5,247 bases of DNA from Octopus sinensis (Eukaryota). This document shows positions 2,947-4,476 of this stretch, in pieces; position 1 is the first letter of the stretch, and each line of letters starts with the position of its first letter. The translations under genes were made by a program, and so were the position numbers. The notes beneath the pieces were generated by a model that was given only the letters and a program-made list of their open reading frames with translations, was not told where the DNA came from and ran no database searches. The DNA lies in assembly GCF_006345805.1 (NCBI RefSeq), contig NW_021830098.1:1-5247 (forward strand), in the 5' to 3' direction.

Positions 2947-3052
2947 GCTGAATCCTTGCATCATGTTTTTTATTTTGATTAATATACTCTACCACCTACA
3001 CCACTAAATGGTATATACAAGTGCTTACAATTATCAAGTATTCACCCTGAAT

Positions 3053-3078
3053 TATATATATATAATATATATATATAT

Positions 3079-3131
<53 letters not shown>
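3053..3131. repeat. Imperfect (TA)n microsatellite
   Basis: Directly visible. Confidence 0.97.
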
Positions 3132-3135
<4 letters not shown>

Positions 3136-3395
3136 GGGAAGAAATGGAGCTGAACGAAGATTTTACAAAATTCCTTTTTATTATTTTCTACGGGCTCCTA
3201 GAGAGCGTTTGTCGAAAAGCTTGCTGCGCATTTTATTTGGAGATTTAAGTTCCTGAATTTTCCTGAAGAGAAAGCTGCAAAATGGTCTCCTTATTCAATC
3301 CGTATTAGGGACTTTGCAACCTTTGAAACATATGTAGAAAATAATAAAAAGGAATTTTGTAAAATCTTCGTTCAGCTCCATTTCTTCCCTCACTA
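3130..3395. repeat. Perfect 62-bp inverted repeat (3130-3191 / 3334-3395) with a 142-bp spacer; MITE-like or inverted PLE terminal repeat
   Basis: TAGTGAGGGAAGAAATGGAGCTGAACGAAGATTTTACAAAATTCCTTTTTATTATTTTCTAC is the exact reverse complement of 3334-3395, checked base by base. Both outer ends are TA. Confidence 0.95.
3257..3342 (+). ncRNA. Type I hammerhead ribozyme with an intact catalytic core and PLE-type palindromic stem III; predicted cleavage after GUA, between 3336 and 3337
   Basis: Stem I ATTTTC(3257-62)/GAAAAT(3337-42); CTGAAGA 3263-69; extra G3270; stem II AAAG(3271-74)/CTTT(3321-24), TGCAAA(3276-81)/TTTGCA(3313-18), GTCTC(3285-89)/GGGAC(3308-12); GAAA 3325-28; stem III inside the palindrome ACATATGT 3328-35; triplet GTA 3334-36. 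Confidence 0.85.
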
Positions 3396-3552
3396 AATAT
3401 ATAAAACTTCAAATTTCCGCACTAAGGCACGGTTTGGAGACCCCATGGTCGTAACCTCAACCGTGATCTTTCTGTTGTGATTTTTGCTACCCAGGTATCG
3501 GTTATAATTTGAATAATCCGTAACAAGATAATTCATTTATCCATTTCAATAA

Positions 3553-3558
3553 TATATA

Positions 3559-3594
<36 letters not shown>

Positions 3595-3616
3595 TGTATG
3601 TATGTATGTATGTATG

Positions 3617-3646
<30 letters not shown>
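3553..3646. repeat. (TA)n followed by (TATG)20 microsatellite
   Basis: Perfect TATG run at 3565-3644. Confidence 0.98.
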
Positions 3647-3647
<1 letters not shown>

Positions 3648-4476
3648 TGCTCCCACACTGCTATAGAGAAGCATCTTCACTCGATGGGAAAGGTTCAGAA
3701 GTATGGAGCATGGGTTCCGCATGCTTTAAGTAACAACAAAAATCAACGAATCACAATCTCAGCTGGTTTGCTTCTTCGTCACCGCTCAACTCATGGACAC
3801 AAGCAACGACTTTTTTACCGAATCGTCACTGGCTGCGAAAAATGGTGCCTGTATATTAATATGAAGGAGCGTAAGAAATGGCTTAGCCCCCGGTAAACGA
3901 GCGACACCGCACGTGAAACAAGTTCTTCATCCGCGTAAAACGATGTCGAGCGTATGGTGGGACTGGGAAGGGATTATCCATCACGAATTACTTGAACGGA
4001 ACCAAACGGTCAACGCGGAACTCTATGTTCAACAGATGGAACGACTCAACATGGCTATTCAAGGGAAAAGACCTAATCGGCAGCATGGAGTTCTTCTGCT
4101 GCACGACAACGCCCGCCCTCATATCGCCAATATGACCAAGGAAGCCATTCAAACGCATGACTGGGAAGTGCTATCACACACGCCGTACTCTCCTGATTTG
4201 GTACCAACGGGTTTCCACCTCTTTCGATCTCTTTCAAATGCTATGGGCGGAGTTTAGTTCAATACAGATACAGAATTGAGAGTTTGGTTGGATCAATTTT
4301 TCGAGTCGAAATCAGGTGATTTTTACCAACGAGGTATTGAAAATCTTGTTGAACGTTGGGAAGAAGTTGTAAACAACAAGGGTGAATACATCATTGATTA
4401 ATTAGTTGTTATTTTTTATTAAACCTTTTAAAAAATTAAAGTTTAAAAAACAGCGGGAACTTAGTTACCAACACAA
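3647..4476 (+). mobile_element. 5'-truncated mariner (DD34D) DNA transposon with right TIR
   Basis: Contains a transposase relic, a 3' UTR and a terminal sequence at 4449-4476 whose reverse complement TTGTGTTGGTAACTAAGTTCCCGCTGTT resembles mariner TIRs. It is followed by TA (4477-78). No matching left TIR is present in the window. Confidence 0.92.
3648..4401 (+). pseudogene. Mariner transposase pseudogene (C-terminal ~250 codons)
   Basis: Motifs WVPHAL, IVTGCEKW (normally GDEKW), LHPRK, VWWDWEG, HDNARPH, YSPDLVPTGFHLF (normally YSPDLAPSDFHLF) and C-terminal RWEEVVNNKGEYIID* (TAA 4399-4401). There are 34 residues between the HDNA aspartate and the third catalytic position. Lesions are a +1 frameshift in the C5 run at 3887-91 and a premature TAG at 4255-57. 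Confidence 0.95.

Follow-up and report, generated by a model that had tools for sequence, protein, structure and literature searches.

A probable long-stemmed, dimer-dependent type I hammerhead motif in the 3' region of a Penelope-like element family with Hydra-clade features

The hammerhead ribozymes described in Penelope-like elements (PLEs) are of type I, possess a short palindromic helix III, are active as dimers and occur as opposite-strand pairs 100-700 bp apart, and the double hammerhead is the established model for them as it is for newt hammerheads (PMC4209133; PMC6765202). Among PLEs, the Hydra clade has a signature consisting of RWK, DKT in place of DKG, CxCX5C, and an endonuclease (EN) without CC and with CxxC/CxH; its members insert into (TA)n, are found in aquatic invertebrates including molluscs, and carry hammerheads (PMC8557442). 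Here we analyse contig NW_021830098.1 of Octopus sinensis, whose entire 5,247 bp constitute the window studied (the 2.7-Gb assembly is eukaryotic and rich in microsatellites), and concentrate on a hammerhead motif at 3257-3342 of the forward strand. A first-pass annotation, made from the sequence itself, had seen there a PLE-style type I hammerhead needing a second copy, and had taken the dimeric activity of minimal type I PLE hammerheads as established, in agreement with the literature cited above. The host repeat is a PLE, with the motif on its sense strand near the 3' end. In our view 3257-3342 is likely to be a hammerhead motif belonging to a PLE family that shows Hydra-clade features, dependent on dimerisation and distinguished by an extended helix II. 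The family consensus would still cleave, probably weakly. The window copy is a truncated, dead insertion and is probably silent.

Anatomy and score of the motif

Read along the forward strand, the motif runs AUUUUC / CUGAAGA / 55-nt hairpin / GAA / ACAUAUGU / A / GAAAAU, with the following parts (RF00163 is the Rfam Hammerhead_1 model):

3257-3262 (+): helix I, 5' strand AUUUUC (ATTTTC); from direct reading and the RF00163 alignment, and changing together with the 3' strand between families
3263-3269 (+): core box C3 U4 G5 A6 A7 G8 A9 (CUGAAGA); from direct reading and the RF00163 alignment, and invariant in 10/10 copies linked to an open reading frame (ORF)
3270-3324 (+): helix II, an imperfect hairpin of 55 nt whose closing pair is G10.1 (3270)·U11.1 (3324) and which carries 3304T and 3320A
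3325-3327 (+): core G12 A13 A14 (GAA); from direct reading and the RF00163 alignment
3328-3335 (+): helix III segment ACAUAUGU (also written ACATATGT); 2 bp and a 4-nt loop in the monomer, an 8-bp helix between two copies
3336 (+): A17, with the predicted scissile bond 3336/3337, from its place in the Rfam alignment
3337-3342 (+): helix I, 3' strand GAAAAU, within the right arm of an inverted repeat
3343-3347 (+): AAUAA, 7 nt past U16.1, a spacing shared with the genome's genuine hammerhead families

The conserved core is complete (CUGAAGA at 3263-3269, GAA at 3325-3327, the pair A3328-U3335, and A3336 as H17, not G), helix I consists of six Watson-Crick pairs between 3257-3262 and 3337-3342, and helix III is formed by A15.1-U16.1 and C15.2-G16.2 around AUAU. 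The topology is that of type I, with helix I open and three helices surrounding the core, and positions 1-45 of the covariance model (CM) align over their entire length. The palindrome ACAUAUGU is perfect, and a helix III that has 1-2 bp and is palindromic at 15.2-16.2 and in its loop is of the kind known from PLEs. Direct reading thus bears out the type I hammerhead first proposed at 3257-3342, its ends matched by the RF00163 alignment, together with its core bases (CUGAAGA, GAAA, U16.1, A17), its 6-bp stem I (ATTTTC with GAAAAT), the assignment of G3265 to G5 and of G3325 to G12, and the predicted position of the scissile bond.

Helix II is where the description has to be amended. It had been given as a 54-nt multi-helix stem; it is 55 nt long and forms one imperfect hairpin with no multi-helix junction. 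Its length does deviate from the minimal form, as had been remarked, since helix II of known PLE hammerheads spans 4-8 bp. The wobble G3270·U3324, at the position usually occupied by G10.1-C11.1, had been overlooked. No extra nucleotide lies between A9 and 10.1 in the register used, and the canonical family resident in this genome lacks it as well; an alternative minimum-free-energy register bulges G3270, but without G10.1.

The Rfam search proposed for the motif gave a mixed answer: RF00163 aligns at exactly 3257-3342, yet the score of 20.2 bits (E=0.0086, searching 282 nt x 4227 families) is under its gathering cut-off of 34 bits. The scan of the whole window gave no RF00163 match, its filters having removed it, and the 20.2-bit match appears only when the search is confined to the neighbourhood. 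Rescaled to this family, the E-value corresponds to ~8e-5 per window and to ~40 such matches in a 2.7-Gb genome. A descriptor as loose as that of the first-pass annotation matches nowhere else in the window and has one match among 3000 dinucleotide shuffles, and the chance expectation genome-wide lies between ~40 (CM estimate) and ~170 (descriptor estimate). An accidental motif within the window is therefore unlikely, whereas at genome scale the score alone is not convincing, and context and homology supply the remainder.

The host element, its insertions and the genuine hammerheads of the genome

When the longer copies of the repeat are followed in the 5' direction, they lead into an ORF, which in locus L088 is open for 640 amino acids (aa) up to the locus edge. 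A single frame contains reverse transcriptase (RT) motifs B-E and a thumb-like segment (VPMGSSDSAQIADL, YRDD, FLDVTL and a thumb-like ...KPS..L.YV...SNH), followed in the same frame by the EN motifs AIY..(10)..YIG, R, H, CxxC-E, N and CxH, that is, at motif level, one ORF with an RT and, at its C terminus, a GIY-YIG endonuclease. Between GIY and YIG lies AIYQCRVYTDSDVYIYIG with one Cys only, so the CC of CCHH is missing, and CALCNSE ... LVNS ... RCPH follows. First-look candidates for the endonuclease number 16,921 genome-wide, and their open frames extend to 906 aa. A large protein search with the ORF returned five unnamed metagenome proteins. The metagenome protein P0002 is collinear with the ORF and 38% identical in the RT. 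It carries RWK, DKT, CxCX5C, a GIY-YIG domain that lacks the CC of CCHH, and CxxC/CxH flanking E and N, which matches the Hydra-clade signature exactly (PMC8557442); both collinear homologues, P0001 and P0002, carry RWR/RWK and DKT. At the position where P0002 has CNCRIPGKC, the linker of the copies read is Asn-rich, Cys-free and devoid of CxCX5C, a difference from the Hydra clade. This linker between RT and EN also contains a length-variable (AAT)n run (L074:2028-3308(-), L088:1498-3420(-)). Because CxCX5C is absent from these copies and the N-terminal ~260 aa are known from homologues only, the host is best described as a PLE with Hydra-clade features and not as a proven member of that clade, the assignment having been made by motifs.

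The motif is present in all ten loci found via the endonuclease, on the ORF strand and at the same place, which is ~0.6 kb downstream of the stop codon of the RT-EN frame and ~55 nt away from the 3' end of the tail-less form (L074, L093, L085-L094). Its core, helix I and palindrome are invariant across these ten copies. In the window, positions 3192-3395 are ~93-95% identical (by eye) to a stretch ~0.5-0.7 kb downstream of the RT-EN ORF in L074 and L085-L094, and the insertion is composed as follows:

3052-3129 (no strand): (TA)n-rich microsatellite, left side of the insertion target; read from the sequence, other copies being likewise (TA)n-flanked
3130-3191 (-): inverted copy, truncated at its 5' end, of the final ~62 nt of the element (it is the reverse complement of 3334-3395)
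3192-3395 (+): 5'-truncated fragment of the PLE 3' untranslated region (UTR), in sense orientation, containing the hammerhead motif
3396-3551 (+): optional one-sided tail, ending CATTTCAATA before (TA)n; conserved in many copies
3552-3646 (no strand): (TA)n then (ATGT)n, right side of the insertion target; read from the sequence

The window thus contains one dead PLE insertion in a (TA)n microsatellite, made of a 62-nt inverted copy, a ~204-nt sense 3' end and a 156-nt tail. Its arms (3122-3191 and 3334-3403) measure 62-70 bp and are 99% complementary.

At least 2043 first-look candidate loci of this repeat are found in the genome. The length of the left arm differs in nearly every copy, from ~55 nt through full ~211-nt foldbacks up to ~540 nt, while the conserved tail of ~156 nt (1842 candidates) stands on one side only and is present in 6/10 ORF-linked copies (L087-L090, L092, L094). 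Copies without it end ...CACTAAATATATA(TA)n, copies are flanked by (TA)n, and L054 and L057 are plain 5' truncations anchored at the 3' end of the tail. Given the 62-70-bp arms, the TA flanks and a nearby mariner remnant, we initially favoured a miniature inverted-repeat transposable element (MITE) or foldback DNA transposon of Tc1-mariner type, and dropped it on account of arms of ~55 to ~540 nt, single-arm 5'-truncated copies and a unit running upstream into an ORF. PLE insertions are characterised by 5' truncation, by an adjoining 5'-truncated copy in inverted orientation, by a tail that may be present at one end and by microsatellites as targets, (TA)n being favoured by Hydra, Naiad and Neptune PLEs (PMC8557442); the PLE tail is the interval between two internal start sites of reverse transcription, and in vitro both strands of the target are cleaved and extended by the PLE protein (PMC11167929). 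The variable arms, the one-sided tail, the anchored 5' truncations and the tail-less ends together overturn the MITE reading in favour of PLE insertion.

Further observations concern individual copies. In L002, L003, L008 and L009 the tail adjoins the short arm instead of the long one. At L066:1560-2400(-) the PLE 3' UTR forms a very large inverted dimer whose arms measure ~540 nt and whose centre is GGTATTTCTTGACCATTAATACC. The centre of the full foldback copies (L017:1694-1757) matches the mir-28 model at 50 bits (cut-off 64) because it is a near-perfect hairpin, and offers no evidence for a microRNA (miRNA) gene. A second, degenerate hammerhead was considered in the tail, where GAGACCCCAUGGUCGUAAC resembles GAGACCC...GGGUCGAAAC; the likeness occurs in one subfamily only and was judged to be chance. 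Metagenome scans revealed no copies in other species.

Exact 27-mers spanning the end of helix II to helix I number at least 706, many of them as opposite-strand pairs 37-675 nt apart. One pair of motifs lies on the same strand, 4,256 nt apart and with upstream segments paired to match, which suggests a head-to-tail tandem.

The same genome harbours bona fide Hammerhead_1 matches of up to 48.2 bits. The commonest genuine family reads ...AUGUAC CUGAAGAG ACCC-AGAAC-GGGU CGAAAC AUGU GU Y GUAC.. AAUAA and also occurs in (TA)n-flanked units. Older subfamilies of the window's repeat carry ACAUGUGU, a wobble palindrome identical to that of this canonical resident family, and therefore share CUGAAGAG and GAAACAUGUGU with it. 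AAUAA stands exactly 7 nt after U16.1, directly past the 3' strand of helix I, in every hammerhead family of the genome, and may be a polyadenylation-like signal or a conserved piece of the PLE 3' region. A second genuine family has a long helix II of ~60-80 nt (25 exact pattern matches; 25-34 bits with RF00163; for instance G000:C1:96435221 and C5:69975879). Its helix II contains the blocks CUGCAAAAUGG (CTGCAAAATGG), AGGGAC and GCAG in the same order as that of the window, a similarity significant against shuffles (local alignment, p=5e-4 to 1.2e-3), and both families have a palindromic helix III and a 6-nt helix I strand followed by AAUAA. They differ in that the long-helix-II family keeps the canonical GACCC...GGGUC helix II base and C11.1, with helix I AUGUAC/GUAUA(A/C) and the helix III centre GAUC, whereas the helix II base of the window's family is GAA(A/G)G...CCUU(U/C).

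On these comparisons, the motif of the window appears to be a diverged member of the stock that gave the Rfam-detectable type I hammerheads of the genome; the GACCC/GGGUC helix II base would have been lost, and the adjoining internal loop turned into the pairs GAA(A/G)G...CCUU(U/C). Similarity outside the core to L038 and in the flanks to L047 was considered as well and is not significant; only the helix II block is. No ORFs adjoining the canonical hammerhead loci L031, L034, L047 and L050 were found. At G000:C1:173501441-173502185, five identical 3' halves of canonical hammerheads follow each other on one strand at a spacing of exactly 178 nt, in a retrozyme-like array.

Dimerisation, structural constraint and alternative explanations

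The segment ACAUAUGU had been noted as giving a stem III of 2 bp in the monomer and of 8 bp in the dimer, and RNAcofold agrees: two copies are predicted to form a double hammerhead with an 8-bp intermolecular helix III and a ddG of -8 to -10 kcal/mol, a predicted gain equal to that of the 48-bit resident hammerhead L031. In transcripts or RNA pairs with two sense copies, such as tandem PLEs of the form pLTR-ORF-pLTR (pLTR, pseudo-long terminal repeat), the palindromes would pair into this helix III, and each core would then cleave after A17 to give ends with a 2',3'-cyclic phosphate and a 5'-OH. Cleavage in such tandem or multi-copy transcripts would trim, and in this way process, the PLE RNA. 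In the window copy, the inverted arm pairs with 3334-3395 and sequesters the 3' strand of helix I, and forcing the ribozyme fold costs ~20 kcal/mol with the arm (P ~5e-15) versus ~5 kcal/mol without it. Given this arm, U11.1, two substitutions in helix II and the lack of a sense partner, we expect the window copy to be silent.

Comparison of families is tentatively supportive of the structure. Between families, helix I changes in pairs (G-C or G·U to U-A; A-U to U-A), and the centre of the helix III palindrome is AUAU, AUGU or GAUC, each self-complementary. In a covariation alignment of 14 sequences from three families, with distal helix II trimmed by hand, 91.7% of the cells are paired versus 82.5% after shuffling, both partners change in five pairs, covariation scores 0.342 as against 0.171 for shuffles, and controls in which the alignment is slid collapse. 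This between-family covariation of helices I and III, drawn from three families, would fit a constraint on the structure. Within the family, shared subfamily-level variants occur at 2/35 essential positions (U/C at 11.1 and A/G in the palindrome), and both keep pairing; singleton mutations are spread evenly over essential and flanking positions, as dead copies should show. Compared with shuffles, the stability of the consensus helix II is far greater (z=-4.5 to -6.7). That of the window copy is weak (z=-1.05) because 3304T and 3320A, both off the family majority, each break a pair.

The pair 10.1-11.1 deserves separate consideration, as it is the most conserved one after 15.1-16.1, although natural hammerheads with a U10.1-U11.1 mismatch are reported (PMC3088659). 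Among the exact 27-mers, 627 have U11.1 and 79 have C11.1 (706 in total, ~89% U). The C11.1 form is a real subfamily with diagnostic changes of its own and often has C in both foldback arms; since C11.1-G12 is a CpG, U11.1 may have arisen by decay. The helix II base stays fully paired in the form most frequent among ORF-linked copies (GAAGGCUGC/GCAGCCUUU). U11.1 lineages have thus outgrown C11.1 lineages by ~8:1 with the ribozyme otherwise intact and the base of helix II re-paired, and we tentatively propose, without favouring the idea, that either the G·U form is competent or cleavage is dispensable and helix II has been repurposed. If G10.1·U11.1 with a 55-nt helix II were fully competent in vivo, the most conserved pair of the family would be relaxed; if cleavage were dispensable and the long helix II served RT/EN binding or the timing of dimerisation, the family would be a natural experiment on the purpose of PLE hammerheads.

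Several points weigh against a working PLE hammerhead. The monomer populates the ribozyme fold with an equilibrium probability of only 5e-4 to 1.4e-2, a minor state as expected from a 2-bp helix III. The earlier suggestion that the long stem II might allow tertiary contacts finds no support, no contact between helices I and II being evident in the motif. G10.1-C11.1 is G·U in 627/706 copies and in 9/10 ORF-linked ones. Every copy tested scores below the Rfam gathering cut-off (20.2 bits in the window and 24.6 for a C11.1 copy, versus 34), L017 and L074 give no RF00163 match at E<=10, and at the same limit the remaining 3' UTR of a long copy contains no canonical hammerhead. The alignment used for covariation is small, and the excess of shared variants in the flanks (18/93 positions versus the 2/35 essential ones, p=0.098) is a trend only. 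RT and EN are recognised by their motifs and by one sub-threshold hidden Markov model (HMM) match, Pfam GIY-YIG being the top match for the EN domain at E=0.0047; sequence searches of Pfam, PHROGs and PDB with the ORF and its homologues gave no significant match, and there is none at the HMM or structure level. Finally, PLE hammerheads cleave poorly in vitro (PMC4209133), and catalytic hammerhead mutants are without effect on PLE insertion in vitro (PMC11167929).

According to the main rival, the motif derives from a PLE hammerhead and has lost its catalysis family-wide, through CpG decay of C11.1 to U and remodelling of helix II, the hairpin being kept for other reasons such as recognition by RT/EN or RNA stability. 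The numerical dominance of U11.1, the CpG context, the sub-threshold scores and the indifference of insertion to hammerhead mutations are all compatible with such a relic, as is the proliferation of Naiad PLEs without canonical hammerheads (PMC8557442). We nevertheless regard it as unlikely: core, helix I and palindrome are invariant in the ORF-linked copies, the helix II base is fully paired in their commonest form, subfamily changes preserve pairing, and the G·U pair retains G10.1, a natural U10.1-U11.1 variant being reported in hammerheads.

A hairpin-RNA locus, in which the inverted repeat would form a long duplex in read-through transcripts and feed small-RNA pathways with the motif as a bystander, is very improbable. 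The whole insertion does fold at -131.6 kcal/mol (z=-15), and the full foldback copies with their ~211-bp arms resemble miRNA-precursor models, but the inverted copy is a by-product of PLE insertion and no conserved design, its length varying and many copies lacking the arm, and neither core conservation nor covariation would be explained. Least credible of all is that CUGANGA...GAAA arose accidentally in a foldback/MITE-type DNA transposon with TA target sites, for although the near-complementary arms, the TA repeats at both flanks, the mariner remnant close by and the number of motifs expected in a genome of this size would allow it, the varying arms, the single-arm 5'-truncated copies, the upstream RT-EN frame, the homology of helix II to that of genuine hammerheads, AAUAA at +7 with identical CUGAAGAG and GAAACAUGUGU in the resident canonical family, and the covariation between families stand against it, and context and homology essentially exclude a chance origin. 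A dimer-dependent type I hammerhead of a PLE family thus remains our preferred reading.

The rest of the contig has features of its own. A remnant of a mariner-type transposase occupies 3648-4400(+), of which 3865-4257 matches Pfam Transposase_1 (PF01359) at E=2.3e-20; it includes LHDNARPH, and its frame is broken at both sides. Three direct-repeat pairs, 72-76% identical, lie at 480-980 (502/652, 557/877, 601/924) and suggest an old, degenerate repeat of ~150-320 nt. Microsatellites cover much of the contig (983-1420, 1630-1670, 2370-2412, 3552-3646, 4478-4830), comprising (TG)n, (TA)n and (ATGT)n runs as well as one compound array, (GATA/GACA/GGAT)n, and yield spurious sub-threshold matches to miRNA families in Rfam.

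Significance and comparison with known systems

The kind itself is not new, PLE hammerheads having been described as early as 2014; the window's family is long-stemmed and missed by the Rfam threshold. The gathering score overlooks a family with at least 700 exact-core copies and ~2000 candidate loci, and ribozyme and PLE content is consequently under-counted in such genomes. For repeat annotation, it is helpful that an apparent TA-flanked MITE turns out to be a typical product of PLE insertion, with an inverted truncated copy and a one-sided tail. Within one genome, the two subfamilies with C11.1 and U11.1, their long-stem sister family and the canonical family form a graded series bearing on what dimeric hammerheads require of helix II and of the pair 10.1-11.1.

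Like the animal non-LTR retrozymes (10.64898/2026.07.22.740005), the sequences described here are PLE-derived and hammerhead-bearing, and the genome also contains the 178-nt tandem array of canonical hammerheads. The window copy itself is not tandem, and we rejected a non-LTR retrozyme for it, as the window holds one sense copy and no head-to-tail repeats of ~170-400 nt; with a single sense motif, neither unit-length excision nor a circle is expected. The hammerheads of newt satellite 2 (Forster et al. 1988) and of Schistosoma Sm-alpha (Ferbeyre et al. 1998), as summarised in PMC4209133 and PMC6765202, are likewise metazoan type I motifs in repeats. In those summaries, helix III is, as here, too short for activity of the monomer, and the active form is accordingly a double hammerhead; they differ in being tandem satellite or SINE-like units (SINE, short interspersed nuclear element) with loop-loop contacts between helices I and II, where we find a dispersed PLE 3' region and no evident contact.

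The Hydra-clade PLEs (Craig et al. 2021, PMC8557442) have canonical, 'readily detected' hammerheads, whereas helix II and 10.1-11.1 are non-canonical here. They are shorter than 3 kb, as against an apparent ~4.3 kb derived from one tandem spacing, and have CxCX5C in a linker that is Asn-rich here, and a tail of 30-40 bp instead of ~156 nt. Shared with them are the C-terminal GIY-YIG domain lacking the CC of CCHH, the CxxC and CxH that flank E and N, homologues with RWK, DKT and CxCX5C, insertion into (TA)n, a hammerhead near the 3' end and an aquatic-invertebrate-type genome.

The closest counterparts of the motif itself are the minimal, dimeric type I hammerheads of PLEs (Cervera & de la Pena 2014, PMC4209133; Lunse, Weinberg & Breaker 2017, as represented in PMC6765202). 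Their helix II of 4-8 bp contrasts with the 55-nt hairpin described here, as do the mostly G·U pair at 10.1-11.1, the lack of a clear extra nucleotide between A9 and 10.1 and the sub-threshold Rfam score. In common with them, the window's family has a helix I within the range of 4-6 bp, a helix III of 1-2 bp with a palindromic loop and the need for a second copy (PMC4209133). It is likewise sited in the terminal repeat or 3' region of a PLE, and occurs in thousands of dispersed, mostly truncated copies and in opposite-strand pairs, 100-700 bp apart in the PLEs described (PMC4209133).

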